Shown here: positions 21,748 to 55,109 of the stretch, piece after piece | How positions within the stretch are numbered: the first letter of the stretch is position 1 | How the letters are laid out: every line of letters begins with the position of its first letter | Source: Piromyces finnis finn | Taxonomy: Eukaryota > Fungi > Neocallimastigomycota | Assembly (NCBI GenBank): GCA_002104945.1 | Contig: MCFH01000048.1 | Location: forward strand, 124,001-188,000 | Direction of reading: 5' to 3' | Length of the DNA stretch: 64,000 nt | Program-made: the position numbers and the translations under genes | The notes under the pieces: model-generated | Seen by the model: only the letters and a program-made list of their open reading frames with translations | The model's database searches: none | Told to the model about the DNA's origin: nothing

Positions 21748-21829
21748 GTCACTTTGGCGGAGTGGTTAACGCGGTGGCCTGCTAAGCCATTTCCCTTTGG
21801 GAGCGCAGGTTCGAGTCCTGCAGGTGACG
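21748..21829 (+). tRNA. tRNA-Ser(GCT)
   Basis: Acceptor GTCACTT/AGGTGAC, anticodon arm GTGGC-CTGCTAA-GCCAT, long variable arm, GGTTCGAGTCC B box. Confidence 0.95.
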
Positions 21830-21838
21830 AAATTATAT

Positions 21839-21911
21839 GCGAAGTTGGCGCAGTCGGCAGCGCGTAAGTCTCATAATCTTAAGGTCGTGAGTTCGAACCT
21901 CACACTTCGCA
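21839..21911 (+). tRNA. tRNA-Met(CAT), elongator type
   Basis: Acceptor GCGAAGT/ACTTCGC, loop CTCATAA. G1:C72 and a GTTC T-loop argue against an initiator. Confidence 0.95.
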
Positions 21912-22402
21912 TATTATTTTAAATATAGAAAAAATTTTTATTTATAATCATTGTATAAATGTTAAATAATAAAACAATATATATATATATATATTTGTAT
22001 ATAATAATTTTTTTCAAGAAATAGACTAATAAAAATTTTTACTTATTTTATTTGGTTATTTATAATTTATTTATTAATAAATATTATTACAAATCTATAC
22101 TAATATTACTTATGTTTTATTAATTATATATAATAATATTTTCTTTTATTTTTTTTACAATACTTTTTATTATATAAAAACTTATTTTTATCTCTTAATT
22201 ATTATTATTTATTATTTAACTAACTATATTAATTATAACTTAAAATTAACTTATTTCTTAATAATATAAGTCTTCTTATTTTGTACTAAAAATTATTTTT
22301 ATAATTTAAAGATAAATTTATAAAATATTTAACTTTATATAAATTATATTTTTAAAATAAACTATATAAAATTATTTAATAATTATTTTTATAATAAAAT
22401 TT

Positions 22403-23100
22403 TGTGAAAATATTAACTGAATTTAAAATAAAATCAGATAATATCTATATCAACTAAAACATAATAATTATAATTAAATAATTTTAATAATTATTTTAAA
22501 ACACCTTTAAAAGACTCATTTTGATATTTGATTTAGTAAAAGGGTTATAACTTCAAAAACTTTATGTCAATAAACTATAACCCTTAATAGAAAATAAACA
22601 AACACAAAATAGGGTGTAATTCGCTAAAATAAAAACCAGATTTAATAGAAAGTTTAGGGGAAAAGCTACATTTTGGTACAATCGCAATCCTTCTAACTGG
22701 TCATTTAAGGAAAAGATGATCATTTAAAGTTTTCAATAGGTAAATTAAAATCAATATGATATATCAAATATGGATCATAAATATTTCTTATGACTTTATA
22801 AAAATTAAAAATATATCAACAAGAACTCTAGTTACATTAAATTAATGGAAATGACTGTTACTAAAAATATAACTAAACCATTTAGGTGTAACAGTTATCA
22901 TACATAAATGAAATAATATTAATTATTATAAACTAGGTTAACAGCAAGTTTTATTATTAAAAAATAATTTTTAAAATAATAATCATTTAATTGTAACAAA
23001 TATGTTATTATCAATTAATAATTAATTGAATTTATAATTATTAATTGTAATCAAATGTATAAATGATTAATCATATATTTATTTTACTGTATGCCATGAC
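22403..23100. repeat. Family-I LTR fragment, inverted relative to 61360-62334
   Basis: Reverse complement of about 61730-62334 (CCATTTAGGTGTAACAGTT, CACCTTTAAAAG, GGGTTATAAC). Confidence 0.8.
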
Positions 23101-24160
23101 GAATTATTAATTTTAATATTAGTAATAATCTTTACAAATAATTAAATTTGTATAATATTCTAAACTATTTATACTATTTGTAAAAATTATATTTAATAAT
23201 AAAATAGCTTTTCAATACATGATTATATTTATAATTCATAATACTAATACTTAAACTTAAGCTTTATTCGTAATTATTAAAAATAACTTTTATGTTATTA
23301 ATAATATTAATTATTATATAATTCATTGAATATAATTATTATAGTTATAAATCTTTTAATTCAAAGATTATAATTTATCTTATTGAAATAATTGTTATAA
23401 AATAAAGTTATTATCTTCCGGAGGATTATTTTAATTTAATTTAATTTAATTAATTGAAAGAGATAATTTAATTTTACAGAATGATTTATAATTAATAAAT
23501 GCATTATTCTCTGAATTCTCATTAATCATTTGTACGTAAATATCTTTAAATCTTAATATCTCGTAAACCACAAGAGATATTATACCTGTATTAACATATG
23601 TTGTAGTTCTCGAGCGTGGCTTTCTAACGAACATAGCTTTATCGGAAAATACATTCATTCAAAAAACGCCATTCGTTGTTGGTTACAATTATTTTTCGTT
23701 ATTAAATTATGATCTTAAGGGTTAAAGGTGCTTATAATATTTTCTGAAAGGGTTAAGGTCATGTTGCTTGAATTTTTAATATTCTTAATAATATTCAATA
23801 TTGTTGTGAACATTTATGGACACATAATTTTATTTATTTATATCATATATTTATTACACACGTGACTATTTTATAAAAACATAAACATGTATTAAAAGTG
23901 TTGTAAACGTAATGTCTACGTGTTGTAGAGAAAGTTATTTTTTATTTATTTTATTTTATTTTCTATGGTCACATGACCTTACATCTCATTATATAACTGT
24001 AATATTTACAATGTAACTTTTTCTCTTTGTTAACCTTATTAATAAAATTATTTATTAATTAAATTTATTTCACAGATTAAGAGTCTCAAACTCTAATCAA
24101 TAATAAAATTTCTTAAGAAAAATTTAAAGCAAAAATTTTTGTGTGTTTAAAAATTTTAGT

Positions 24161-27100
24161 ATGTCCCAGCAATTAATTTTAGCCAATAATCAACGTCTTC
24201 ATGGAAAATCCAACTTTGACACTTGGAGTCTTTTAATCAAGTCAGCTGCTTCTAGACAGGGTCTAACTAGCTATCTTGATTATGACATTGTTGGAACCAT
24301 CAAAGACGACAGCTTTAAGATAGACTTTAATCTTAAAGATGTTTACACTATGGCTATTGTAAAAATTATTGCTAACTACCGTACTAATAACTTACTCGCG
24401 TCCGTTTACAAAACCTTCACTAAAGCTATGGGGGAGGACGCAAACCCAAGCAGCAACATTAATAACATTAATGTTGTAGCCGCCAATAAATTGGCAAACT
24501 CGCCAATTTATAAGGCCGAGATAGTATCAGCAGCTGAAAGTCTTAATGCTGATGCACACCTTATGATCATTCAAAATGTGGATGAGAAGATCCTCAGAGA
24601 GATTGGTCATAATACTAGCTGTTACCAAGTATTCAAGAAGTTGAATACAAAATACGGTAACGCTAATGCAGACATCGAATACTGGCTAAAAAAGTTAAGA
24701 AAATTACATACTGAAGATGTAAGCAAAGTCAGTAAAACCATTGATAATGTCAGGGAAATCTTCCTTGAGATGTCTGAACAAAGAATGTCCTTAAGTGAAA
24801 GGGAAAAACTAAAATATATGTACAATTCCCTTCCAAGAAGTGTCAAGAACCAAGTAAGTGTAACCTTAGATGAAACTTATGATCAGCTCTATGAGAAGGT
24901 CAAAAGTTACATCAACGCCAAATCCTACTTCGAAGATTGGACCAACAACGACCAAGATGAAGATGACGAAGTTGATGATCCAATGGATGTTGATTTTGTT
25001 AGTAGAGAAAACAAATCAACAAAGAATAAAAGCTACGGTAATAGAAGAAATATAAACAGAAGCCACCGTACCTACTGCCATATCTGCTGTGAACATGGAC
25101 ACTCTACCGAAATGTGTGAATACAACCAAAAGGCCAAAATGGAAAGGGACCAAAGAAAAAACAACAACAGGGCCTTTAACCAAAGTAAACAAAAGAGAAA
25201 TTCACAACAAGGGAGGCAAGTTCACAAGAAAAAACAACAAAAGAAATTCGAACAAGAAGTAGATTTCGTCGAAGACTATGACGATAATGAAAATTATGGA
25301 ATTAACGTAGAATTCGAAGATATCAGACCTCTGACAGAAAGAAATATCTACCTAATTGAAAAGGATGAAGTTACAGAGGAAGACACTCCTAACACAAAGG
25401 ATATAGATTATGTGTATGGAGAAAATAAATACGACGAATGGTTCTATGATACTGGTGCCGCCGAACATATCGTTAATAATAAGGACATTCTAGAGAACTT
25501 CACAGAAGAGCACATTCAACTTAGATGTGCAAATGGAACTACCTGTGAATTTAGTGGTTATGGTTCATATGAGTTTAAGGTAAAAGACAAAACTTACAAG
25601 TTAGAAAAAGTTTTGTACTCAGACAAAGTTAGCAAGAATTTAATTAGTGGTGTAGGACTTGCTAAAGTTGGTTTAAGAAGCATTATAGATATTACTGATG
25701 ATGGAAAAGTCAGGCTTATTTTCAAGGACTCTGAAAATAAAAATATAATGCAAACGTATTCAAATGAATTAAATCAATTTAAAATTAAGCTCATAAACAT
25801 TAATAAAAAGATAAATGAACCATTTATTGCAAACTTTGAAGATGATTTAGGTATATGGCATAAGAGATTAGGTCATTTCTACCAGAAGGATCTGAAGAAA
25901 TACCTAAAACAACATAAAATTAAAGTAACTCCTTGCCTAGACTGTAAAATATCTAAAATGAAGAAGTCTCCACATAACAAAACCGTACCCAAAGCCGGAA
26001 GAGTTCTAGAGACTATTCACTCCGATATTTCAGGCCCGTTTAATTCATCCGTCAATAATAAGAAGTATTTTATGACTATGCTGGATGAATACTCAAGAAA
26101 ACTCTGGATTTATACTCTCAAGTCAAGGTCTGAGGCACCGGACATTATTATTGAATTCCTAAAGAATGCCAATAATACTTTTGACAAATATAAAGTCAAA
26201 ACATTCAAGACAGATGGTGCAAAAGAGTATAATAGTAGTAAAGTTATAAAATATTGTAAGGAAAACGGTATATCTAAGATAAATTCACCTCCTTACATAC
26301 ATGAATTAAATGGTAAAGCAGAAAGAATAAACCAAACTATTCAAAATTCTGCTAAAACGCTTTTATATTGGGCTAAATTATCTGAAGACTTTTGGAGTTT
26401 TGCTGTTAAATATTCTTGTTATATTTACAACAAAATACCACACCAAGGAAACGATAACTTAATTCCTGATGAAGTGTTTACGAACGAGGAAGCCGATCTA
26501 AAATACCTAAAGGTATTTGGATGCATATGCTACTTTAAGGACTATTCTCTTAAAAAGTCAAAATTTGCGCCTAACTCGAAGGAAGGAATATTTCTTGGGT
26601 TCAGTGAAGCACATCACTCATATATCGTCATGGAGATATGTGGTGATAAACTTAAAATCCACTATTCTAGGGAAATAGAATGCTGTGAAGATAAGCCGGC
26701 ACATTATAATTATAAAAATAAAAATATAAACGATCCGTATTTCTCTTTCAATGATTCATATAATATCAATAATTACGACAGAAAGGACCCCTCAGAATCA
26801 TCAAAGAACAACAACAATACGGATACAAATTCAATCATAAATAAAGAAAATAATAACACAGAAAGGACTACTTCCAAGAAAATGGTGAATATCCACTCCA
26901 ATAATAATGAAGAAGAAGTAGAAGAAGAAATGGTTGAAGAAGGTAATAACAACAATATGGACGAGGACCCAGCTTATGAAAATACCAAATATAAAGACGA
27001 AGAGATAACTACCAAAGAAAAAGAAGAAACTAATATAAGGACTAATATTAATTCCAAAATTGAAGAAAATTCAAAAAACAATTTAAACAGTAATTTAAAA

Positions 27101-29106
27101 AACGACACTCAAACCAATAACAAAAATAATAATTCAAATTCGAAATTTAATAAAAATAAATTTACAAATGACATTTTAAAAGTTTTAGAAGAAATTGCAA
27201 ATGACAATTGCAATTTCGAAAAGAAAAATTACAAAATTTCTAATAATATTGACGAAAATAATAAATACCAATATCCTGTAACTCCTGGTCCTGATTACGT
27301 TTGTTATGGTAATACTCTTGCCGACAAAAACAAAAATGAAATCATTAAAAATCCTGAATATTATAAAAATTCTCCTACTGAATATTCTACCACCGAAAAT
27401 ATTTCCTATACCAAAAATACTGGTGAAAATACTACTGAATATCCTAATACTGATCATAGTGAAAAAAAAATTTTTATTAATAAAAATTTTTCAAAAATTC
27501 AAAATAAAAATGATGACATTCTATTGGATGATAAACCAAATAATCCACGTCATAATTCTAGCAAAAATTCTAACGTTACACAAGATAATTCTATCTACTC
27601 TGATAATATGGATATTAATCATAATAAAAATTTAAATTCAAAAATTTCTGATTCTCCTGATATGACACGTGATTCCCATTATTATATCTCAGATGACAAT
27701 AAATCTATGGATGATCCTGATCCAAACTTGGAAGATGAAAATGATATCATGGATGATATCATGGCCGATAAATCTGATGATTCCTACCATCCTGAAAGAA
27801 AAAGGCCTTGCAGTCCTACCCCTCTGAATAATTCCAGTACTCCTAAGAAGCACAAAAACAAATTTATAGCTACCGTTTTTACTGATGCTCCCACTACGTA
27901 CAAAGAAGCTATGTCTTGTACGAATTCTAAATATTGGAAAGCAGCCATTCAAGATGAATTAAATAATTTATATTCTAACAAAATTATGTCCCTGGTTAAA
28001 AATATCCCAAAAAACAAGAATATTATATCTACCAAATGGGTTTTTGCTGTTAAAAGGGACAGCAATAATAATATAGTACGTTTTAAAGCTAGACTTGTCG
28101 CTAGAGGTTTCCGTCAAAAACAAGGTATTGATTTTGACTTAACCTATTCCCCTACATTAAATATTGACAGTCTAAAATTTATTATTGCTATTGCTGCAAA
28201 ATTTAAGTGGGATATATATCAGCTTGATATAAAAGCTGCCTACCTCAATGCTCCATTGGATACAGACATTTATACCACAATTCCGCTTGGAGATAGCAAC
28301 TTTGGGGGAGGATACTGGAAGCTGAATAAAGCTCTCTATGGTTTAAAACAATCAGGAAGACAATGGAATAAAACAATAGATAAATTCCTGAAAAATAATA
28401 ACTTTAAACCATTAAAATCCGAACCATGTATTTATACGTTAAAAGAAAATAAATACGTAAAATGTATAATTGGTCTATATGTAGACGACATGGTTATAAT
28501 TGGAAAAACAAATACAATAGAGAGAGTAATAAGCAAAATTAAAAGTAGATTTAAAATATCAAATAGCGGCCCTATTAGTTACATTCTAGGAATAAAGATT
28601 GAAAAGAAAGGATCCAAATACATTATTTCCCAAGAGAATTACATTAATAATGTATTACAAAGATTTCATATGGAAAACGTACGTAGAAGAAATACGCCAT
28701 GTACAACAACCGACAAGAACACCTCAAATAATAACCAATTCGATAAAACAAAATATAAAAGTGCAATAGGTGCATTAATATATCTGTCAAAATGTACAAG
28801 ACCGGATATAGCGTTTGCAGTAAACAAAGCTGCAAGAAAATCTGAAAATCCAACAGTATCTGACTGGAATACAATTGTAAATATTTTCAGATACATATCT
28901 ACTACCAAACATTACAAAATCGAATACAGTGGAGAAGGAAAAATACAAGGATACACTGATTCGGACTACGGAGGCGCAGAAGACTTTAAATCTACCTCTG
29001 GAGGGATAATCCTAATGGGAAATAGCCCAATATGCTGGTTATCCAAGAAACAAACTTGTGTGGCAACATCTACCGCTGAGGCTGAGTACATTAGTACGTC
29101 CATAAA
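24161..29106 (+). pseudogene. gag-pol: Copia Gag-PR-IN-RT-RNase H(N) polyprotein, interrupted in RNase H by A2
   Basis: ATG at 24161. CHICCEHGHSTEMC, YDTGAAEH, WHKRLGH, DISGPF, KARLVARGF, YVDD, SKKQ..VATSTAEAEY; Copia order with IN before RT. Confidence 0.95.
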
Positions 29107-30114
29107 TGTAAAGATATCAAACGCCTCTGTTTGATATCTTTAATGTAACTTAAGCCACAAGTATTATTGTTTAAGTTACACAAATTATATTCAGAAAAAG
29201 AAAATGAGACATAATTTATTTATTAATAATTAAAGTTTAAAACAAAATAAATTATTAATTTATTTTTAATGTTTAACAAGTAAATTAATATTCTCAATTT
29301 AAATCCCTAGTTTTAGTATTGTTTTTTTATAGAAATAGATAAATAATAAATGATTAATATATCAATAATACATGGGCACATATTCAAATTAAATGGTACT
29401 TAATTTGAATTGCCAATTGTATTTTACTAAAAATAGTTATAGTTTAAATATTTATTAATAATTAAGATTTTAGTGTAGATTTTAAATAATAATATATAAG
29501 AAATAAATAGTTATAATATAATATAAATGTATTTAGGAAAAATATAAATAGAAGATATTTTTCATCATTTTATCGATGTAATTGTTATTATTAAAATTCT
29601 ATTATAATAAAAGATATTTTTAATAAAACAATTTTTTATTTTTATTTTAAATTTAGTGTTATTGTAATAGAATAGATATCCTAATCTATTCTTTCTGTGT
29701 CGACTTTACAATAACAATTACCCAACGAAGATAGAGAATACGTTAGGGTATCTACCGCCGGGTACAAAAAGCAAGAAAGAACTTTAATTACTGGTTAGAA
29801 TTGGAAACTACCGCCGAATAAAAAGAAAGAAGAAATTTTGACTACTGGTTAGAATTAGAAACTACCACCGAGTGCAAGAAGAAAGAAGAATTAACCAATA
29901 TTAATTAGTAATACAAAACTTGTTCGACACTGCTTTGCAGAACGCGTTTGAATAACTTTTGTATTAGGATAAATTGTAGTAGTGTAATTAAAAAAAAAAA
30001 AAATTTAAGATTACTTACTTGAAATAGTAGTAAGAAACCATTTTAATTTTATATTATATATTATATTTTGAATTGGAGGATTTAATTAGTGAGTTTGAAA
30101 ATTTAAATTTAGAA

Positions 30115-32340
30115 ATGGGTGATAGGAATGTGGGTGTTTCCGGGAACTCGGGGAACATTATTAATGCTCCACCGACATTTTCTGGTAAACAAAGAGAATT
30201 GGATGGATTTTTAACTAGAGTGGAGTTGGTATTTCGTACTCGACCGATACTGTATAATACAGATCGAGTCAAGGTCGACTTCGTTATATCATACTTTTCT
30301 GGTAAACCTTTGGAATGGGCTTCAGTGTTGATGAAGAATAATAGTGGGGTTTTAAACCATTATGATGAATTTGTAGATAGGTTGAAGGCTAATTTTGGCA
30401 GTTATAGATACGATACCGTTGTAGCTAACGGTAAATTAGATAATCTTCGCCAAAGGAAACTTGGTCAGGTATTAGATTACATTACCGAGTTTCAACGTAT
30501 TAGCCAAAATTCAAGCTTTAATGATAGCGCAAAAATCTACATGTTTCTGAAAGGTTTATTACCACCACTTAGGGAGAAGTTGGCTTTCATTGAATCAAAC
30601 CCAACTTCAATTGAACAATTGATTTCTTCAACTATTTTAGTTGAAGATATGATGAAAAGGAATTCGCTTAGTGAATTTTATTTTAATAGTAGAAGGGCTG
30701 ATGATCCTATGGATGTGGATGTATTTAGAATTAGTAGAGAAAACAAGCGTAGAAGGTATGTGAATATCCAAGGATCAAGTAAAAATTACAATGAAAACAT
30801 AGATAACTTTGAAGAAGAAAAGAAAAAAGGGTTATGTTTTCTTTGTAAACAACCGGGACATTTAAAATTTAATTGTCCTAATAGAGTAAAGCCCAGAAAA
30901 GTGTTAAGAATTGTTAAAGAAAGGACTCCAAAAATTGTTAATCCAAAAATTTACAAAGTTGGAGTCAAGGGAGTGAAAAGTGATTTAAACCTTGTGGATT
31001 TTTACTTGAGTACCAATGAAGTTTCGGAAGTTAAAATTAAGGTTTTAATTGATTCCGGTTCTGAATTAAATTTCATTAATCCAAGTCTTGCTGAAGACCT
31101 TGGTATTAATTTGGAAAAAGTAGAACCATTCTGTGTATCTGGTGTTAGTGATGGAGTTGTTAGTGTTTGGGAAAGGACTGAGAAGTGCATGCTCCGTTGC
31201 AAAAATCACTTCGAAGTAATTCAACTTTATGGATTACAAGTCCCCGGTGTTGATGTTATTCTTGGTTTGCCGTGGATAAAGAAGCATAATCCAAATGCTT
31301 TCTACGACTCTAAGAAAATCGCTTTTAGTTCTGGTTATTGTGCCAGACATTGTAATAAAGGCAAAAGAAAGAGAAAACCAAGAAAGAAGTCAAAGAATGA
31401 TCAGTTAGATCATGATGTTCTCGACCGAAGCTTGACCAAAAAGCCGAAAGTAGATCCCTCTGTCCCAAACAATGAAGAAAAAGAATATGTTAAAGGCCGC
31501 CTTGTTAGAACCATCAATGATGAAGATGATAGCGATGATGAATATATTAGTTTTAATAAAAAAGTTAAATGTATTGTAACAAAAATTAATGAAACATGTA
31601 ATAATGATAACGAATCATGTAGTAATAATAATAATAATGGAAAAGATATTAATAAAGATAAATTGGTCGCCGTACCAACCCAATATTTAGAATTTAGTGA
31701 AGTGTTTAATGAAAAAAATTGTGAAGTGTTACCTCCTCATAGACCTTATGATTGTGAAATCAAACTTAAAGATGATTCGACTTTATTTTATGGACCTTTG
31801 TATCCATTAACTGAAGTTGAAAGAGAGGAACTTAAAAAATATATTGATGATAATTTAAATAAAGGTTTTATTAGGAAATCATCGTCTCCTGCTGGTGCCC
31901 CAATTTTATTTGTTAAAAAGAAGGATGGCTCCCTAAGACTTTGTATCGATTATAGAAAGTTGAATGATATTACCATTCGTAATTCATATCCTTTACCTTT
32001 AATTAGTGACCTTTTGGATAGGGTGAAAAATGCTAAGATTTTTACTAAATTAGACCTTAAATCCGCTTATAATCTTGTTCGTATTAAAGAAGGTGACGAA
32101 TACAAAACGGCTTTTCGTACTAGATATGGACATTTTGAATATCTGATTATGCCTTTTGGATTAAAGAATGCACCTGCAACTTTTCAACACTTCATTAACG
32201 ATGTCCTTAGTGACTATTTAGACGATTTTGTTATCTCATATATTGACGATATTCTTATTTATTCTAATAATATCGAAGAACATCATGAGCATGTTAAAAA
32301 GGTACTTAAGAAACTACTTGAAAATAATCTTTATGTTAAA
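30115..32340 (+). pseudogene. gag-pol: A2 gag-PR-RT(N)
   Basis: ATG at 30115, CCHC, DSGS, YIDD. Ends ..LYVK at the insertion. Confidence 0.93.
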
Positions 32341-33101
32341 TGTAAAGATATAATATATATCTTTAGATTATTTAATAATTAATTATTAATTATTAAATAA
32401 TAAATTAATATTTAGTAAAACTGATTATAAAATTTTTGAGTAGATTTTATGGAATAATTTAATAATAAATTATTTTATAATAATTCCGTTAAATTTAAAT
32501 TAAGATAAATATTTAAGTTTAAGGAATAAAAGAATTTTAATTAAATTTAAATATTTTTTAAATACTTTTTATTTAATTTTAGAATAGATTATACTTTTTT
32601 ATTTAAATTTAGAATAGTTTAATAATTTTAACTTAGTTTTAAAAATAGATTTATTTATATTTCAATAGGAAATATATTAAGAATAGTATTGATAATATTA
32701 AATTAATTTATAGAAAATACATGGGCTTTATTCAATTTTGAGTTTACTCAAATTGAATTAAAAGTATAATGAATTAGTTTAGTTTAGTTCTGTTATTTTA
32801 TTATTTAATTAAATTAGTTTTGTTTATTTTATATTAAATATATGTTTATTTAAATAGAATAATATATTAGAATATAATTATGAAAAAATATAAATACATG
32901 TAATTTTTATTTGTTAAATCGATGTAATTGTTATTTTCAATTTTTTAATTATTAACTATTATATAGTTAATAATCTTTTTAAGAGTTTTAAATAAAATGA
33001 TTTTTAAAATAAAAATTTAATGTTTTATTTTTTTATTTTTGTGTTAATAAAAATTGTTTTGTTTTAAGTATGAAATCTGTTTTAAATTTTATACTTTTAC
33101 A
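32341..33101 (+). repeat. Solo LTR N (761 bp, distantly A-related) inside A2 RT
   Basis: TGTAAAGATAT..TTTTACA with TSD TTAAA (32336-32340, 33102-33106). Removing it restores YVK|LEKCEF in frame. Confidence 0.93.
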
Positions 33102-33106
33102 TTAAA

Positions 33107-35431
33107 TTAGAAAAATGTGAGTTTGATGTTGAGAAAACCACTTTTCTTGGTTATGTCATTTCAAAGGATGGATTGCAAATGGATGAAAATAAAGTTAAAG
33201 CAATTCTCGATTGGCCGGTTCCCAAGAATGTTAAAGAGGTTCAGTCTTTTATTGGTTTATGCAACTATTACAGAATTTTTATTAAAGACTTTGCTAAAAT
33301 TGCAAACCCTCTTCACAAACTCACTAGAAAAAATGTTGCTTTTAACTGGGTGAAAGAAGATCAGGACGCTTTTATTTTATTAAAATCTCTGTTCACGTCA
33401 GCTCCTATTCTGAAACATGCGGATAGTAATAAACAATTTATTGTAGAAACTGATGCTAGTAATTATGCTGTCGGTGCTATTCTCTCTCAAGAATTTGATG
33501 GCAAATTACATCCTATTGCATTTCTTTCTAAAAGTTTGACGAGTTGTCAAAGAAACTATCCTATATATGACAAGGAACTTTTAGCTATTGTAGTTGCTCT
33601 TGAAGAATGGCGTCATTATTTAGAAGGTGCATGCCATCCGTTCATAATTTATACTGATCACAAGAATTTAACATTTCCTAGAAAACCTGAAATGTTATCT
33701 CAGAGACAAATTAGATGGAATTTGTTCTTATCCAGATTTGATTTTAAACTCATTTATAGAGCTGGAAAGAAATCCGGTAAGCCTGATATCCTGTCTCGTA
33801 GAAGTGACCATGTAGAGAATAATATTAATTCTGATGTTTCTTGTCTTACTATTTCGTTTCATCATAGCGATAACAAACCGTTAATTGATTCTATTTTATT
33901 AGAACTTAAAAATGACGATTTGTATAATTCTATTGTCCAATTTAAAATGAATGGTTCTGCATGTAATGCACCTATTAAAAATATTGATAAAGTTATTATT
34001 GATAACGAAGGATTTTTGTTATATAATAATCTTATTTATGTTCCTAAATCTCTTAGGACAAGAGTTTTGGAACTTCATCATGATTCTGTTGCTGCTGGTC
34101 ATTTCGGTATTAAGAAAACCACTGAACTGATTTCCAGAAACTTTTGGTGGCCAAGGTTTCATTCAGACGTTAAATCTTTTATCAAATCTTGCGTGACTTG
34201 TTGCAAATCCAAAGTCCCCAGACATAAGCCTTATGGATTGTTATCCCCTTTGGACACTCCCAGTAGGCCCTGGTCTGATATTTCTATTGATTTTATTGTT
34301 GATCTTCCTAAGTCCAGAGATATGACAACTCTCATGGTTGTTGTCGATAGATTTACTAAATTTGCTCACGCCATTCCTTTACGTTGTCTTCCTACTGCTT
34401 CGATTGCTTCTGATGCTTTTATTGCTAATGTCTTCCGTTTGCATGGTCTTCCTGATTCCATCATTTCTGATAGAGGCTCGCAATTTACTTCTGACTTTTG
34501 GTCAAGACTTTGTGACCTTCTTAATATCAATCATTCATTATCAACTGCCAACCATCCGCAGACAGATGGTCAAACGGAGAGGGTGAACGGCATATTAGAA
34601 CAATATTTCCGTTGTTTTATAAATAAAAAGCAGAATAACTGGGTTGATCTTATCCCATTTGCTGAATTTGCATATAATAATACTTTACAACAATCTATAA
34701 ATCAATCCCCATTCTTTGCTAATTATGGTTTTCATCCAAAGTTCAGCTTAGAAATTCCAGCTAATGATAGACCTAGTAGAGCTGAACAAAGAGTAATTGA
34801 TATGAATGAAAACTTTAAATTATTAAAAGAAAACTTAGAAAAAGCAAAAGAAACATATAAGAAATATGCCGATATGAAGAGAATGATTCCCCCGGAGTTC
34901 GAAGTGGGAAAGAAGGTATGGTTATTGAAAGATTCTCCTGGAACTAACCTAAAGAGAAAATTAGCACCTCAAATGCTTGGCCCATTTGAGATAATTGAAA
35001 AAGTTAGTTCTCTTGCTTTCAAATTGAAACTTCCAAAGACAATGAGATGTCATCCAGTCTTTCATGTTTCATTGTTAGAACCATACTTTGAAAACAAGTT
35101 TAACGACAGGTCTAATCGTAGGAAGAGGAACATTCACCTTAACACAGATTTAATTGAAAAAATTCCAGAGAAAATTGAAAAGATGAAATCTGTTAATGGT
35201 GAAACATTTTATAAGTTATCATGGAAAGGATTTGACAAATCCACTTGGATTTCTGAAGATCAGATTCCAGATAAACAATTAATACAAGAGTTTGAAAGAA
35301 ACTCTAAAAAGTCAAAATATAAGTCGAACGACTCCTCCATGAAAATTAGAAAGAATAAAGTTGGTAATCTAATCAAGCACAGATACCAACCATTTGTAAT
35401 TGAAATTCCTTCGAGAAAAGATTCCTTATAA
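33107..35431 (+). pseudogene. pol: A2 RT(C)-RNase H-IN-degenerate chromodomain
   Basis: LEKCEF, VETDAS, HHCC, ISIDF, GPF and YKLSWKGF..TWISE tail. Confidence 0.93.
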
Positions 35432-41522: not shown

Positions 41523-41525
41523 CAA

Positions 41526-41653
41526 TGATAAATAATTAAATTTATAAATTATGAATTTATAATAATAATAATAATAATATTAAAACACAGATAGTTAAAA
41601 ATTAAAATAATTAACTTGTATAAAATTATTAAATTAAAAATTATAAATGTAAA

Positions 41654-41684
<31 letters not shown>

Positions 41685-42096
41685 TAAATTAAATAGCTTA
41701 TATTTGTTTATAATTATACTTTAAAATAATAATTTTGCATAAATAGTGATAGAATCATTTTATTTTAAAATTGTTCCTAATAATCCAGTAAAATTAGATA
41801 ATAATATTAAATTTTATTAAAATAATAGTTGTGATTATATTTACATACATTCAAGATGTATTAAACCATAACATATATATATTTAATAATACAAGAGTTA
41901 TTAAATATTAAAACTTTATAATTAAATAAAATAATTTTATATTTTAAACTAACAAAGACTTGCAAATGAACAAGTATAAAAATCATTCATTCTATTTTTA
42001 TTTTCTTATTTATTTTTATTTATTAAATTTTAGATACAAATATTATCACTTTCTATATTCATTTATAGAATTAAGATAATATTTTTCTTCGTATCA
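41526..42096. repeat. Solo LTR G, copy 1
   Basis: TGATAAATAATT..CTTCGTATCA with TSD ACAA (41522-41525, 42097-42100). Confidence 0.92.
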
Positions 42097-42101
42097 ACAA
42101 A

Positions 42102-42133
42102 TGATAAATAATTAAATTTATAAATTATGAATT

Positions 42134-42173
<40 letters not shown>

Positions 42174-42247
42174 TTAAAACACAGATAGTTAAAAATTAAA
42201 ATAATTAACTTGTATAAAATTATTAAATTAAAAATTATAAATATAAA

Positions 42248-42278
<31 letters not shown>

Positions 42279-42692
42279 TAAATTAAATAGTTTATATTTG
42301 TTTATAATTATACTTTAAAATAATAATTTTGTATAAATAGTGATAGAATTATTTTATTTTAAAAGATGTTCCTAATAATCCAGTAAAATTAGATAATAAT
42401 ATTAAATTTTATTAAAATAATAGTTGTGATTATATTTACATACATTCAAGATGTATTAAACAATAACATATATATATTTAATAATACAAGAGTTATTAAA
42501 TATTAAAACTTTATAATTAAATAAAATAATTTTATATTTTAAACTAACAAAGACTTGCAAATGAACAAGTATAAAAATCATTTATTCTATTTTTATTTTC
42601 TTATTTATTTTTATTTATTAAATTTTAGATACAAATATTATCACTTTCTATATTCATTTATAGAATTAAGATAATATTTTTTCTTCGTATCA
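42102..42692. repeat. Solo LTR G, copy 2
   Basis: Tandem near-copy of 41526-42096 with a longer (AAT)n. TSD reconstructs as CAAA. Confidence 0.92.
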
Positions 42693-43653
42693 CAATGATA
42701 ACGGATTGGTAGTTATATTACAACTTTTTAACTACTTCTTCTGTTATCTTATATTGTTTTATCTCGACAGCTATTGTACGAGCTTTAACAATATCTACTA
42801 GTTTTATTAATTTATTTTAAGTTATTTTATAATTTTAATAGTTTTATTATTTTAATAATATTTATATAGAATAATAACACCAGATTTATTCTATAAAATA
42901 TTATTTATTATTAACACAATAATTACAAATTAGACAAGTTTAATTTCGTTTTTATATTTTCTTTTATTTATTGTTCTTACGCTCTTTTTAACAATAATTT
43001 TTATTATATAAAAACTTATTTTTTTTGTCTTTTAAATATTATTATGTATTCACTAATTAATTATATTAACTATTATTAAAATTTAACTTATTATTAGTAA
43101 TCTAAGTCTTCTCATTTTCTACTAAAAATTATTATTATTCTTTATAATAAAAATTATTTTTATAATTTAACCCAATCAAATATATAAATTTATAAAATAT
43201 TTGATTTTATGTAAATTATATTTTTATAATAAACTATATAAAATTATTTAATAATTATTTTATAATAAAAATTTCTACTAATATCAAATGTATAATATAT
43301 TTATAATTATTATTTATCAAGATTTCCTCCCCTAAGATACGACTTAGTGGTAGCTGATAAAAATATTCATAAATAATAATAAATATATAAGTTTTTGATA
43401 TTTTTATACTAAAGATTTAAAAATTTAAATTTTTTTTTTTTCTATATATATGATAAAAATAATATAAAATAAGGTTTATAAAAAAAATGATGAAAAATTT
43501 GAAAATTTTTATTAATAAAATTTTTTTTTCAAAGAGAAATAAAAAAAATGAAGTGAAATTTTGTTAAATGTCGTAGTGTAAATATTTTTGTGTTTTTATA
43601 TATTTTTGTAATGTAATTGTCGTATTATTTGTATATAAATGTTTAATGTGGTT

Positions 43654-45651
43654 TTATCTTTCTTTAAACTTTGAAAATAGATGAAATTTTGATTTTAATA
43701 TGTCGAAATAATGTCGTTTTAAAATTGAAGTTACTGATTTGATATAATCTTTTAGATTGAAAATAATTGAATTTGAAATACTTTCTTTTACACTTTTTAT
43801 TATACTGAAATATATATTCTTAAACGAATTATTTGATGAATTTTTGATTATATCATTTTGTTTATTTCGCTTTTTTCTTGATTTTAATTTCCTGTTAATA
43901 TTAATATTCAAATGATTATATTTTAGAATTTTACTTTTATTTTTATATATCTTGATTTTGTGGCATTTTTCGTGAATAATTGGCGTTTTTTCTGCTTCAT
44001 CACGGCCGACAAGATTTGACTTATTAATTGAAAATTTAATAAGTGAATCGTTTTTAATTCTTTTTGGAAATTTGCTGAAATTTGAATGAAAAATGTGATA
44101 TTTTGGATAAAAATATTTATTTTTAAATTTGAATAAATGTCGAAATTTAATTGAATATAAAAGTTTGTTTTTATTGTTAAAAGTCGAATTAAAATTTTGA
44201 ATTTTGATATTATTATTAAATGAATTAAATTGAGATTCATTAATATTTGATGGATTGAAACAATGAATCATTGAAATATTTGAAAGATTATTTTTATTTT
44301 GTTTAAAATTTGAGGGACGAGCAACCATAATAGGAGATGAATTAGTTTTCATGTAGAGAGAGTCATCATCAGGATCAATGTATAATCGGTGATTCTTTTG
44401 AGATTGACGACCTAATATAATATCATAACATGAATCTTCATCTTCTAGAATCCAGAATAATGCATAGATTTTTAAATCACCAAATTTAAGAGTTAAATTA
44501 ACAGCTTGATTTGTTGAAATAACTTGTTTGCTAGCTAATTTAAAGAAAGTTCTCTTAAAATGTGTAATATTATGATTTGCTGATATTAAATTAAAGAAGG
44601 ATTTAGTAATAACATTAACATCAGAACCAGTATCTACTAAAACTCGGACAATGTTATTATCAATTGAGCCAATGACAGAAGCAATGTTGATTTTATTAAT
44701 GACATTAATTTCGTTATCTGCTATATTGATAATATCATCATCATTGTCATTATCAGCATCATCATTGTTTTCATTATTTTTATTATTATAATTTTCATTA
44801 ATGATATTAATAAATGAATTAATATCATCATCATTAAGATCCATATTTTGAATGGCGTTTATTTTCCGAACGTCATTTGGATCAAGCTTTAAACCTTTGG
44901 CACAAAGTCTTCTGATGATAGGACTGACTGCAAGCAATTGTGCAAAAGAGATACCAGCATTTGTATTATTAAGGGCATCAAAAATATTATATTCTTTATT
45001 TTTGCCCAACATGACAATAGAACGTAGGAAGTCATAATAGTTGCTTTTGGGAGACTTTTTGCTATCTATAACTTCTTCTAATTCGTCCTGTTTACTTGGT
45101 ATATCTGGACCAATTCTTCTTTTATTTCTGGTTTCTTTATTTTTCATCTTAGCAGAGGAAATATTCTTGCCTGCAATTACCGAGGGGTCTAAGATGTCTA
45201 GGCGGGAAGTAGTGGTATGAAAATTTGAATTTTTCTCATTACGAATTTCTTGCTGTTCTTTCATCTGAGTGGCCTTTGTATGTATTGGTAATGGATTTTC
45301 TCGAAGTTTCTTTTTCTTCGACTGAGTCACGTGATCCTCATCATCACTTTCATCACTTTCTTCAGAACTTTTTCTCTTGAATGCATAAATAAGGTTTTCG
45401 ATGTCCTTATCATCGACTGTATTTGTCACGTGATCACGTGTAACGTAATCCTTATCATCTTCATTGATTGGATCATCCACCAAAGGGTTAGAGAATTTTT
45501 CTTTAGAATTTGGAAATTTTTTTGTTTTATGGAAATCACGTGTATCATCAACATAGATTTGCTCATTAATGTTGTTGATGTTGTGGGTTTGGTTATTATC
45601 AATTTTGGAGTTAGAAGGGGAAGATTGAGAACTTCCCCCATTTAATTTAAA
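43654..45651 (-). CDS. Aspartic protease ORF of E (-1 frame from gag), with no RT/IN motifs
   Basis: VLVDTGSDVNVIT and DIILGR protease motifs. Frame is open up to the slippery heptamer at 45645-45651. No YxDD or integrase motif. Confidence 0.85.
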   Translation of the reverse strand, partial: FKLNGGSSQSSPSNSKIDNNQTHNINNINEQIYVDDTRDFHKTKKFPNSKEKFSNPLVDDPINEDDKDYVTRDHVTNTVDDKDIENLIYAFKRKSSEESDESDDEDHVTQSKKKKLRENPLPIHTKATQMKEQQEIRNEKNSNFHTTTSRLDILDPSVIAGKNISSAKMKNKETRNKRRIGPDIPSKQDELEEVIDSKKSPKSNYYDFLRSIVMLGKNKEYNIFDALNNTNAGISFAQLLAVSPIIRRLCAKGLKLDPNDVRKINAIQNMDLNDDDINSFINIINENYNNKNNENNDDADNDNDDDIINIADNEINVINKINIASVIGSIDNNIVRVLVDTGSDVNVITKSFFNLISANHNITHFKRTFFKLASKQVISTNQAVNLTLKFGDLKIYALFWILEDEDSCYDIILGRQSQKNHRLYIDPDDDSLYMKTNSSPIMVARPSNFKQNKNNLSNISMIHCFNPSNINESQFNSFNNNIKIQNFNSTFNNKNKLLYSIKFRHLFKFKNKYFYPKYHIFHSNFSKFPKRIKNDSLIKFSINKSNLVGRDEAEKTPIIHEKCHKIKIYKNKSKILKYNHLNININRKLKSRKKRNKQNDIIKNSSNNSFKNIYFSIIKSVKESISNSIIFNLKDYIKSVTSILKRHYFDILKSKFHLFSKFKER

Positions 45652-46496
45652 TGGTTTTGGGTTTTGAGGAGGGTAGCTATGATTTTGTTCACATCGGTCA
45701 TTTCGTTTGGGCAGAAGCGGGCATCATGTCCTTTCTGGTTACAACGGTGGCAGATATGAATTTTCATCTGGGCAAGGCTTTTGGTCAAAGCATCCAGATC
45801 TGATTCTTTAGCTTCTTCTTTAGTAGTCTTTTCATTATCAGTACTACTATTATTTTCGTTATTATTATAAGAGGTTTTATCTTCAACTTCTATTTTTCTC
45901 TTATAATAATTATTTTTGTTTTGAGTTCTTTTATTGGGTACATATTCATCATCACTTTCATAAGCAGATAGAAGCTCATCTGCTTTAATAGCAATGACCA
46001 TAGCATCCTTTAAAGTTTTTGGTTGTTTGTTAATAAGAGAATTTAATATAGAAGTTCTCCTATTAAAAGCTTTTGTATAAAGAAAAACAAGTCTTTCTTC
46101 AGAAGGCTTGTCCCTTTCTTTAATTTCTTTCAAAAGGTCGTTAAAAGAACGGTTAAATTCTCTAACAGAGCTTTTGTTTACTTTTATTTTTTCTAACTTA
46201 TTTAGGTTTCTATTAGAGGTTTTATCATCCTCAAATAAGTTAGATATTTTATTGATAAATTCATTATAAGATAGGGATCTATCTTCATAATAAATATCAC
46301 TACAAAGATCCTTTGAGTTACCGGTAGTAGCAAGCAAAGCAATTCTCTTCTTTTCTTTTTCAGAAAGAGCTAAGTCTTCTAAGATATCTTCAAGTTCCAT
46401 TTTCCATCTGAAGAACTTAGTATCTTTCTTGCCAAGAGGGCTTATTTCTTTAGCCATACTAGCGGCTCTTTCAAAATTGTTTTTATTTTCAGTCAT
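45642..46496 (-). CDS. gag: Gag of E with CCHC zinc knuckle
   Basis: 284 aa, CHRCNQKGHDARFC. Starts about 100 nt after the PBS. Confidence 0.9.
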   Translation of the reverse strand: MTENKNNFERAASMAKEISPLGKKDTKFFRWKMELEDILEDLALSEKEKKRIALLATTGNSKDLCSDIYYEDRSLSYNEFINKISNLFEDDKTSNRNLNKLEKIKVNKSSVREFNRSFNDLLKEIKERDKPSEERLVFLYTKAFNRRTSILNSLINKQPKTLKDAMVIAIKADELLSAYESDDEYVPNKRTQNKNNYYKRKIEVEDKTSYNNNENNSSTDNEKTTKEEAKESDLDALTKSLAQMKIHICHRCNQKGHDARFCPNEMTDVNKIIATLLKTQNHLN

Positions 46497-47235
46497 ATTT
46501 AGTAAATAAATAAGATAATTATACTAAATATACTAATTAATAGGAATTATTTAAATTTTCGGCTTTCCCACGGGACGACTGAGGTTCTCCACCACTTGAT
46601 AACGGATTGGTAGTTATATTACAACTTTTTAACTACTTCTTCTGTTATCTTATATTGTTTTATCTCGACAGCTATTGTACGAGCTTTAACAATATCTACT
46701 AGTTTTATTAATTTATTTTAAGTTATTTTATAATTTTAATAGTTTTATTATTTTAATAATATTTATATAGAATAATAACACCAGATTTATTCTATAAAAT
46801 ATTATTTATTATTAACACAATAATTACAAATTAGACAAGTTTAATTTCGTTTTTATATTTTCTTTTATTTATTGTTCTTACGCTCTTTTTAACAATAATT
46901 TTTATTATATAAAAACTTATTTTTTTTGTCTTTTAAATATTATTATGTATTCACTAATTAATTATATTAACTATTATTAAAATTTAACTTATTATTAGTA
47001 ATCTAAGTCTTCTCATTTTCTACTAAAAATTATTATTATTCTTTATAATAAAAATTATTTTTATAATTTAACCCAATCAAATATATAAATTTATAAAATA
47101 TTTGATTTTATGTAAATTATATTTTTATAATAAACTATATAAAATTATTTAATAATTATTTTATAATAAAAATTTCTACTAATATCAAATGTATAATATA
47201 TTTATAATTATTATTTATCAACAAATTTTAAGAAA

Positions 47236-47307
47236 GGAGGGTTGGCGCAACGGTAGCGCGTCCGCCTCCAGAGCGGAAGGTTGGGTGTTCGAATCACTCA
47301 CTCTCCA
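47236..47307 (+). tRNA. tRNA-Trp(CCA)
   Basis: Acceptor GGAGGGT/ACTCTCC, arm CCGC-CTCCAGA-GCGG, GTTCGAATC, followed by a TTTT terminator. Confidence 0.95.
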
Positions 47308-53639: not shown

Positions 53640-54260
53640 TGATAAATAATAATTATAAATATATTATAAATTTGATATTAGTAGAAAATTTTATTATAAA
53701 ATAATTATTAAATAATTTTATATAGTTTATTATAAAAATATAATTTACATAAAATCAAATATTTTATAAATTTATATATTTGATTGGATTAAATTATAAA
53801 AATAATTTTTAATATAAAGAATAATAATAATTTTTAGTAGAAAATAGGAAGACTTAGATTACTAATAATAAGTTAAATTTTAATAATAGTTAATATAATT
53901 AATTAGTGAATACATAATAATATTTAAAAAGACAAAAATAAGTTTTTATATAATAAAAATTATTGTTAAAAAGAGCGTAAGAACAATAAATAAAAGAAAA
54001 TATAAAAACGAAATTAAACTTGTCTAATTTGTAATTATTGTGTTAATAATAAATAATATTTTATAGAATAAATCTGGTGTTATTATTCTATATAAATATT
54101 ATTAAATAATAAAACTATTAAAACTATAAAATAGCTTAAAATAAATTAATAAAACTAGTAGATATTGTTAAAGCTCGTACAATAGCTGTCGAGATAAAAC
54201 AATATAAGATAACAGAAGAAGTAGTTAAAAAGTTGTAATATAACTACCAATCCGTTATCA
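53640..54260 (+). repeat. Solo LTR of family E
   Basis: Reverse complement of 42696-43319 with some mismatches. TSD ACAA (53636-53639, 54261-54264). Confidence 0.93.
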
Positions 54261-54276: not shown

Positions 54277-54358
54277 GTCACTTTGGCGGAGTGGTTAACG
54301 CGGTGGCCTGCTAAGCCATTTCCCTTTGGGAGCGCAGGTTCGAGTCCTGCAGGTGACG
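54277..54358 (+). tRNA. tRNA-Ser(GCT), second copy
   Basis: Same sequence as 21748-21829. Confidence 0.95.
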
Positions 54359-54367
54359 AAATTATAT

Positions 54368-54440
54368 GCGAAGTTGGCGCAGTCGGCAGCGCGTAAGTCT
54401 CATAATCTTAAGGTCGTGAGTTCGAACCTCACACTTCGCA
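54368..54440 (+). tRNA. tRNA-Met(CAT) elongator, second copy
   Basis: Same sequence as 21839-21911, followed by TTTT. Confidence 0.95.
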
Positions 54441-55109
54441 TTTTGTTAAATTATTAAAATTTTTTTATTTTTGAACTATGCTTATTAACTTAAGAATATA
54501 TATAAATTTAAAAGTAATTTTTGATGCAATCATTTCTTTTCTATTAATATTTAATAATTAGAAAAACTAAATTTTAAAATTTGATATTTTATTGTATATA
54601 TTATTGTTAAATATATAATTATCAAAATTATAAAGGTATATATAATCTGAATATATAACTAAAAATTATTAAAAATTATGAATAATTCAATTTAAAAAAT
54701 AATATATTAATTATGTAATCTAACCTTTCTGTTATTAAAAATTTTTTAAATATAGCTATCTTTATTATTTTTAAAAATATTTTATAATTCCTGAAATTCT
54801 AAATTGATTCTTAAATGTTTATTTGAACATTTAATTTTTTTGTAATTGGCTTCTATTCCTGATATTGTTTGTTAGCAATCAGTTTTTATTATATTTTTAG
54901 GTTGGTAGCATATAAAGATATTAATGTATTAAAGCATAAGTCTGCTTTAAGCTCTCTAATTTTTTCAAAGTAAAAGTCCTAGATCGCCAACAAATACAAT
55001 GAAGTTCATAAAGATTAACTAGAAGGAAAGACGAAGCCAAGTACCATTAACCACTTACGCGTAATCGTATAGCTAGGTCCAAGATTCAACTAAAAGCTTT
55101 TTAACGTTT

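Follow-up and report, generated by a model that had tools for sequence, protein, structure and literature searches.

Element E, a Ty3/gypsy-type LTR element of Piromyces finnis, is probably an active semi-autonomous retrotransposon, which would produce a Gag-protease-tail protein by -1 frameshifting and would be copied and integrated by a complete 6.6-kb partner element. E is 4525 bp long and occupies positions 42696-47220 on the minus strand of the window, the 64,000-nucleotide stretch of DNA that we analysed.

E has the outer structure of a Ty3/gypsy element and encodes Gag and protease

The two LTRs of E (5′ LTR, 46597-47220; 3′ LTR, 42696-43319; both minus strand) are 624 bp each, have TG..CA ends and are 100% identical to one another. 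The TSD, TTGT (4 bp), is located at 47221-47224 (upstream copy) and 42692-42695, as read on the minus strand. Four further full-length E copies and several solo LTRs also show 4-bp TSDs. The 3′ UTR (43320-43552, minus strand), which E and the partner have in common at 90-92% identity, carries at its end the PPT AGGGGAGGAAA (43323-43333, minus strand) immediately preceding the 3′ LTR. Thus, the identical LTRs, the TSD and the PPT listed in the first-pass annotation of the window are all in place. Its PBS stood only in part. The candidate, TGGTGGAGA (46586-46594, minus strand), begins 2 nt past the 5′ LTR, is identical in the partner, and is a 9-nt complement of the tRNA-Trp(CCA) 3′ end including CCA. 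However, the assignment is weaker than that annotation implied, because the 9-nt match is the best among only 10 tRNAs tried. We found no tRNA that pairs with the PBS over 12 nt or more and has the implied acceptor stem. Self-priming of the Tf1 type was rejected, since the complement of the PBS region is absent from the LTR.

The gag gene (284 aa; 45642-46496, minus strand) matches Ty3_capsid with an E value of 5.8e-11, carries a zinc knuckle of the CX2CX4HX4C pattern, and is intact in 14 of 19 copies. ORF2 lies in the -1 frame and comprises 665 codons from the slippery heptamer (43654-45651, minus strand), with a pre-protease region of about 310 aa, the protease and a C-terminal tail. Its frame is open from 25 codons upstream of the heptamer and ends at 43654. 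The aspartic protease core (44407-44670, minus strand) has the VDTGS and ILGR motifs and matches Pfam gag-asp_proteas and Asp_protease_2 with E values of 2e-4 to 2e-3, which are under the curated cut-offs. A domain search found no RT, RNase H or IN in E, which agrees with the earlier description of an intact CCHC gag and a protease ORF standing without these enzymes. In summary, the TG..CA LTRs, the TSD, the PBS after the 5′ LTR, the PPT before the 3′ LTR, the Ty3-type capsid, the CCHC knuckle and the DTG protease are those of a Ty3/gypsy element, while the PR-RT-RH-IN order of pol is not seen, RT, RH and IN all being missing.

A candidate -1 frameshift cassette is conserved between gag and ORF2

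The 3′ end of gag reads CAT TTA AAT TAA, in which T TTA AAT forms an X XXY YYZ heptamer in the zero-frame phase. This slippery heptamer (U UUA AAU; 45645-45651, minus strand) stands directly 5′ of the gag stop. A hairpin, the putative stimulator, follows 5 nt past the heptamer (45616-45639, minus strand). It has 8 bp and a stability of -13.5 kcal/mol, and is only moderately unusual (z -2.3; 7 of 200 shuffles equally stable). The sequence AUUGA (45599-45603, minus strand) pairs with the loop UCAAU and is a candidate 3′ strand of stem 2 of a pseudoknot. The in-phase heptamer, the hairpin and the -1 frame running into the protease had all been recognised in the first pass.

In four lineages with Gag proteins at only 41-55% identity, no change is seen in the heptamer, the stop codon, the hairpin (core GGGAAG/CUUCCC) or a AAAAUUGA block downstream of them. 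The 12-14 nt between the conserved blocks vary freely among these lineages, and the flanks vary too. Every pair of the proposed RNA structure is invariant in the four lineages, giving no covariation; thus, we treat stem 2 as a prediction. In E and in related families, no stop codon interrupts the downstream -1 ORF within the overlap, and pol of the relatives is a -1 frame that overlaps briefly and lacks a start codon. At the sequence level, the cassette fits a pseudoknot-stimulated -1 frameshift, and it is an inheritance of the whole clade rather than special to E. We infer that -1 frameshifting takes place at the heptamer of E, where it may set the Gag:PR ratio.

E is a dispersed family, often found upstream of tRNA genes

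The genome contains at least 19 full-length E-type copies and about 24 with the same protease-to-tail junction. E is thus not the single-copy internal deletion that the first-pass annotation had set against its own reading. The full-length copies are 97-100% identical, and 28 matches cover the E-specific tail. Both ORFs are intact in 13 of the 19, a 689-aa open frame is present in 19 copies, and about nine copies have identical LTR pairs. LTR copies number at least 40 in the genome. A single nt out of 4525 distinguishes two E copies that nevertheless lie at different tRNA-Trp genes. E copies with more than 99.9% identical internal regions bear LTR variants differing by 5%.

The protease-tail junction is common to every E copy found, so the whole population is without RT and IN. 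No pol-bearing relative closer to E than the 6.6-kb partner was found. Older, decayed E-type tails with 57-73% aa identity are present, which makes the pol-less lineage an old one. Contigs from three runs of the same organism, whose RNA or DNA type is not on record, cover the internal region of E.

A tRNA-Trp(CCA) gene (47236-47307, plus strand) is the target of E and lies 15 nt from its end. Nine of the 19 full copies sit 14-17 nt upstream of tRNA genes, in both orientations, in line with the tRNA targeting that had been proposed; a tenth tRNA-adjacent case is a 5′-truncated copy. Solo LTRs are found 15-18 nt upstream of tRNA genes. Of the two solo LTRs proposed within the window, the one at 53640-54260 was upheld (98% identity; it precedes tRNA-Ser by 16 nt), while that at about 22050 is a partial relative (22061-22422) with 74% identity.

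A complete 6.6-kb element shares its cis sequences with E

The first pass had suggested looking for an element that has pol along with the LTR termini and PBS of E, and the search yielded a complete partner of 6.6 kb. It has about nine copies, three of which hold a pol frame of 1356-1357 aa including protease and RT. Its LTRs are 98-99% identical to those of E and nested among the LTR variants of E, and it has exactly the PBS, PPT and frameshift cassette of E. The protease is followed by RT and RNase H, and the pol order PR-RT-RH-IN is seen only in the partner and in a related family; the partner's integrase and the 3′ part were judged by coordinates and open-frame lengths. A second frameshift between the partner protease and RT was rejected, because the A-run break is confined to copy L030 and three other copies maintain the single long frame.

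Over element positions 1-1100, E matches the partner at 98-100% identity; beyond them, identity falls to 58-96%. The partner protease is just 76-78% identical to that of E. The C-terminal half of gag has diverged deeply, as has the protease (dS 0.5-2.4), so E did not arise recently from the partner. Together with the E copies whose interiors are nearly identical but whose LTR variants differ, this mosaic pattern points, as read from the sequences, to recombination. We call the two elements partners by their shared cis sequences and this pattern, and the 6.6-kb element would be the actual helper of E.

Gag and protease show low dN/dS in the pol-less lineage

We compared E with L025, an old E copy that has the same junction and on which the selection test mainly rests, and obtained dN/dS values of 0.22 for gag, 0.19 for the pre-protease region and 0.08 for the protease (p 6e-4 to 6e-9). 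The E branch alone shows 19 synonymous versus 18 nonsynonymous changes (p 2e-5). Judged by these ratios (0.08-0.22), gag and protease are under purifying selection in the pol-less lineage; the dN/dS check that had been proposed for gag and PR thus gave values well under 1.

The C-terminal tail of ORF2 is an orphan

E-specific DNA (about 43553-44306) occupies the place of pol. Within it lies the tail of ORF2 (217 codons; 43657-44310, minus strand), which is stop-free over its whole length; shuffled sequences had a mean of 15 stops, and 0 of 20000 were stop-free. A HMMER search against 1.84 billion representatives returned only P0004, E's own gene model, which is spliced across two frames. The tail had no Pfam match up to an E value of 10, and nothing usable came from the protein atlas. 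By tblastn, 69 aa of it aligned at 32% with the N-terminal part of the integrase in a related pol (E 0.008); this match was marginal by shuffle test (6/500), and profile comparison gave it no support. A single-sequence AlphaFold model had a mean pLDDT of 38 and showed a C-terminal helix only. Selection on the tail was not significant in the comparison of E with L025 (dN/dS 0.50, p 0.07). We regard it as a speculative and rather doubtful idea that the tail is a working new domain, maybe a much-altered remnant of an integrase N-terminal extension, that could tether the helper's RT/RNase H-integrase or Gag-Pol into E-Gag particles. If true, E would actively capture the enzymes of the helper rather than use them passively.

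Discussion

We propose that E RNA would be translated to Gag and that a -1 frameshift at U UUA AAU on the same RNA would give the Gag-protease-tail fusion. The Gag and protease of E would act in particle formation, with E building its own particles, and the RNAs of E and the partner may be co-packaged. Partner enzymes would then reverse-transcribe and integrate E, and it would be the partner integrase that directs the two elements to sites 14-17 nt upstream of tRNA genes. That the partner may mobilise E in trans is indicated only indirectly, by the mosaic pattern and by the LTR pool that the two have in common.

Could E instead be a recent deletion or replacement derivative, a LARD-like passenger whose idle ORFs are intact through youth while the partner supplies all proteins? 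Most E copies are at least 99% identical internally, so ORF intactness alone proves little, and the tail lacks significant constraint. However, the gag C-terminal half and protease stand at dS 0.5-2.4 from the only complete relative, the comparison with L025 revealed a strong synonymous excess in gag and protease, and the E-type tails that have decayed to 57-73% aa identity also speak against a passenger, a reading that we consider quite unlikely. PEG10, a host gene domesticated from a Ty3/gypsy gag-protease, uses a -1 frameshift, exists in a single copy and has no LTRs. The locus has a similar layout, with gag followed by protease in the -1 frame and with RT and IN absent; the number of copies and their TSDs nevertheless refute a non-mobile host gene of this kind, which has virtually no probability left. 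Unlike PEG10, E is a dispersed, recently mobile family, with about 24 copies, identical LTR pairs, TSDs, solo LTRs and various tRNA genes as neighbours.

The cassette itself could be kept by descent or coding constraint only, with ORF2 made without -1 frameshifting or not made at all. The lack of covariation and a hairpin z of just -2.3 would suit this explanation, as would the coding content of the conserved blocks, which read G-S-S-Q-S-S and K-I in the pol frame. Yet in the four lineages the block codons do not vary at their synonymous positions, although Gag identity is only 41-55% and the 12-14 nt separating the blocks are free to vary. The relatives' pol is a -1 frame that overlaps only briefly and has no start codon, and the E protease is under purifying selection with no other evident route of translation. 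We think it unlikely that the cassette is maintained without frameshifting, and favour E as a semi-autonomous element that uses it.

The first-pass annotation had named TR-GAG elements and PEG10 as the nearest parallels. The closest precedent is instead provided by two gypsy elements from wheat and barley, RLG_Sabrina_SA and RLG_WHAM, which encode Gag-Pro, are classed as semi-autonomous and co-evolve with an autonomous family, RLG_Wilma (PMC9744471). Gag-protease-only semi-autonomous elements are thus already known from wheat, and E adds another. Like them, E forms a population without RT and IN, has intact, selected Gag and protease coding, is matched in cis by an autonomous partner family with which it co-evolves, and has a high copy number relative to that partner. 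Unlike them, E is fungal and small (4.5 kb), has a -1 cassette between gag and protease, inserts at tRNA genes, fuses its protease to an orphan 217-codon tail, and draws on an LTR pool common with the partner, its 5′ 1.1 kb having apparently recombined recently. The TR-GAG elements of plants have a single GAG ORF and no protease (PMC4350172). E is likewise a non-autonomous LTR element keeping a capsid gene and cis signals, but its protease ORF and frameshift site set it apart from a GAG-only, single-ORF element. The barley elements BARE2 and BARE1 are named in PMC9744471. BARE2, a defective element that depends on proteins from a related family, is without functional Gag but keeps pol; E, also defective and presumably dependent on the proteins of a related family, keeps Gag and has lost pol. 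Two autonomous elements, Ty3 (S. cerevisiae) and DGLT-A (Dictyostelium), insert in either orientation at sites that precede the 5′ end of the mature tRNA by about 15 bp (PMC6101501). E shares with them a Ty3/gypsy-type Gag and a narrow insertion window upstream of tRNA genes in both orientations; it differs in lacking RT and IN, and its clade has a -1 cassette in contrast to the +1 frameshift of Ty3 and the single ORF of DGLT-A.

With E, the range of Gag-protease-only semi-autonomous LTR retrotransposons extends from cereals to a fungus that is anaerobic and early-diverging. For Neocallimastigomycota, our analysis further documents insertion at tRNA genes in the manner of Ty3, as well as a -1 frameshift cassette that is conserved; neither feature turned up in our search of the literature. 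The system is compact and readable, with a 4.5-kb parasite of about 24 copies, a 6.6-kb putative helper of about nine copies and a common pool of LTR variants. The pair of E and its partner would make a good model for the question of what a parasitic element needs a capsid and a protease of its own for.

E is a pol-less gag-protease element

The gag-protease LTR element E occupies window positions 42696-47220 on the minus strand from LTR to LTR, exactly the coordinates of the first-pass annotation. Its two 624-bp LTRs are 100% alike, start with TG and end with CA, and the 4-bp target duplication TTGT lies on both sides of the LTR ends. The purine tract AGGGGAGGAAA (PPT) directly adjoins the 3′ LTR. 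The gag gene (46496..45642, minus strand, 284 aa) gives a Ty3_capsid match (E 5.8e-11) and encodes a CCHC knuckle. ORF2, a -1-frame ORF of 665 codons on the same strand, opens 25 codons ahead of the slippery heptamer, contains the protease motifs VDTGS and ILGR, and ends at 43654. A domain search found no RT, RNase H or integrase in E. The identical LTRs, TSD, PPT, CCHC gag and protease ORF, and the lack of RT, RNase H and IN, had all been read correctly from the sequence. The claimed PBS stood only in part: the candidate TGGTGGAGA is present 2 nt past the 5′ LTR (minus strand), but it complements just the final 9 nt (CCA included) of the window tRNA-Trp(CCA), the best among ten tRNAs compared, and a search for a longer tRNA match to this region found none. 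Self-priming of E was rejected, as the LTR has no complement of the PBS region.

Contigs from three same-organism runs, which may be of RNA or of DNA, cover the E internal region. Other retroelements fill the window at 1684-5955 (+), 15964-19569 (-), 24143-29134 (+) and 30073-35431 (+), the kinds being a Ty3/gypsy polyprotein with a chromodomain, another gypsy pol, a copia-type polyprotein and a gypsy element that is split. The genome holds 1499 first-look RT candidates.

E belongs to a young family near tRNA genes

The refuting alternative, that E is a single-copy internal deletion of a full element with the same LTRs, is contradicted by a genome search, in which the 3277-bp internal region gave 19 full-length matches (97-100% identity) plus truncated copies. 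Further copies with the same internal junction, which the first-pass annotation had suggested looking for, thus form a family: both LTRs and the same layout are found in 19/19 full-length copies, and 28 matches of ≥97% identity cover the E-specific 3′ part. Searching at the protein level, we find the whole 689-aa open frame kept in 19 copies; gag is intact in 14/19, and gag and ORF2 together in 13/19. In about nine copies the two LTRs are identical. The window E differs from the copy on contig C187 by 1 nt in 4525, and the two adjoin different tRNA-Trp genes with different flanks, so they are independent, very recent insertions.

Nine of the 19 full copies are inserted 14-17 nt upstream of tRNA genes, and either LTR can face the gene; a 5′-truncated copy makes a tenth tRNA-adjacent case. 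E shares this position with Ty3 and DGLT-A, which insert at the same place relative to tRNA genes (PMC6101501). Our literature search on Ty3-like, tRNA-gene-associated retrotransposons in Neocallimastigomycota listed no paper naming this phylum. Solo LTRs flanked by 4-bp TSDs occur commonly in the genome. One of the two solo LTRs noted earlier in the window is genuine (53640-54260; it is 98% identical and lies 16 nt upstream of a tRNA-Ser gene), while the other, at 22061-22422, is a partial relative of merely 74% identity. A tRNA-Ser(GCT)/tRNA-Met(CAT) pair occurs twice in the window (21748-21912 and 54277-54441), each copy bordered by LTR remnants. Just beyond the 3′ end of E, at 41524-42652, are two tandem LTR-like repeats with a TGATAC start, ~595 bp apart and 98% identical. 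This repeat also borders several E or solo-LTR insertions elsewhere in the genome, so that the elements stack outward from tRNA-Trp.

A complete putative helper shares the ends of E

E internal positions 1-2290 matched 8-10 further loci at just 81-84% identity in the genome search. At one of these, L030, the 5′ LTR is 98% identical to that of E, the PBS is the same, and a typical Ty3/gypsy RT-RNase H immediately follows the protease; a pol-bearing element with the LTR termini and PBS of E, as the first-pass annotation had sought, therefore exists. The L030-type RT segment is present in eight full and three partial copies (98-100% identity), each contiguous with gag-protease matches, and E has in common with it the final 233 bp ahead of the 3′ LTR (90-92% identity). 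Together these define a complete element of ~6.58 kb, the putative helper. L030 (G000:C159) has a frame change at an A-run (1364-1370) between protease and RT, which could be a true inactivating indel or a PacBio assembly error in a homopolymer. We rejected such a break as a helper trait, since L030 alone has it and the copies on C101, C160 and C202 hold protease and RT within one open frame of 1356-1357 aa. A protein-level genome search found no pol-bearing element with a protease nearer to that of E than 76-78% aa identity.

Comparing E with the helper, we find 98-100% identity over element positions 1-1100 (LTR, leader and first ~125 gag codons) and only 58-96% past position 1100, with dS of 0.5-2.4 and dN/dS of 0.05-0.18. 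The internal region hardly varies from one E copy to another (0-2 differences and zero indels in protease plus tail). LTRs of different copies diverge by up to 5-10%, also when the two LTRs of one copy are identical. Helper LTRs nest within the LTR variants of E. Judged by these sequences, E and the helper are mosaics of each other. We infer that E and helper RNAs would have been co-packaged, with template switching between them occurring repeatedly.

Gag, protease and the putative frameshift cassette are retained

The gag end CAT TTA AAT TAA sets a U UUA AAU heptamer in phase, and an 8-bp hairpin (-13.5 kcal/mol, z -2.3) follows 5 nt after it; the heptamer, the hairpin and the -1 frame running into the protease ORF are all in the sequence as first described. 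The cassette of heptamer, gag stop, hairpin and downstream block is identical between E and helper, and the sequence just upstream differs. Three more families were reached via Gag relatives only 41-55% identical, and their pol is likewise in the -1 frame where the sequence extends far enough. Across these lineages AUUUAAAUU, the hairpin GGGAAGUU-UCAAUCUUCCC and, 13-14 nt further on, AAAAUUGA are invariant, while the spacers between the three blocks vary. The cassette is thus an inherited clade feature, retained by E. Pairing of the loop UCAAU with AUUGA would give a candidate H-type pseudoknot; 11/11 of its pairs are invariant, so covariation speaks neither for nor against it. Related complete elements on metagenome contigs from several JGI and ENA assemblies (L061-L071; gag of 283 aa, -1-frame pol of 1341-1352 aa) have the same cassette.

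L025 is an old E copy, now broken, at 93% identity; it has the protease-tail junction of E and is sister to present-day E across positions 1051-2914 with the helper as outgroup. The proposed dN/dS check, done against L025, gave ratios of 0.22 (gag), 0.19 (pre-protease part) and 0.08 (protease), with p values between 6e-4 and 6e-9. Of the changes on the E branch alone, 19 are synonymous and 18 nonsynonymous, against an expected synonymous share of 20% (p 2e-5). These low ratios and the synonymous excess, drawn from the one old copy L025, argue that selection maintained gag and protease in a lineage lacking RT and integrase. An old E-type protease plus tail (G000:C13:911469-914399), stop-ridden, insertion-split and 57-83% identical in amino acids, shows the pol-less lineage to be far older than the young E copies.

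The helper lacks any counterpart of about 755 bp of E (43553-44306). ORF2 crosses 217 codons of this 19% G+C sequence, its tail, stop-free; shuffled tail sequence had a mean of 15 stops, and 0/20000 shuffles were stop-free. Constraint on the tail against L025 was not significant (dN/dS 0.50, p 0.07). Sequence and domain searches found no tail homologues beyond E's own gene model. A weak, marginal similarity of the tail to the N-terminal part of the integrase in a related pol found no support in profile comparison, and single-sequence folding predicted with confidence a C-terminal helix only. The public gene model P0004 (192 aa, 43657-44240, minus strand), which splices a 105-aa gag-frame ORF via a predicted intron to the tail's ORF2 frame, is probably an annotation artefact on the transposon.

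E exemplifies a known kind of element

The observation and interpretation of E in the first-pass annotation hold. TR-GAG elements carry gag only (PMC4350172). E resembles the wheat Gag-Pro-only "semi-autonomous" gypsy elements RLG_Sabrina_SA and RLG_WHAM, which depend on an autonomous family, RLG_Wilma (PMC9744471). The kind is therefore already known, and E is an unusually clear new example of it, in a fungus.
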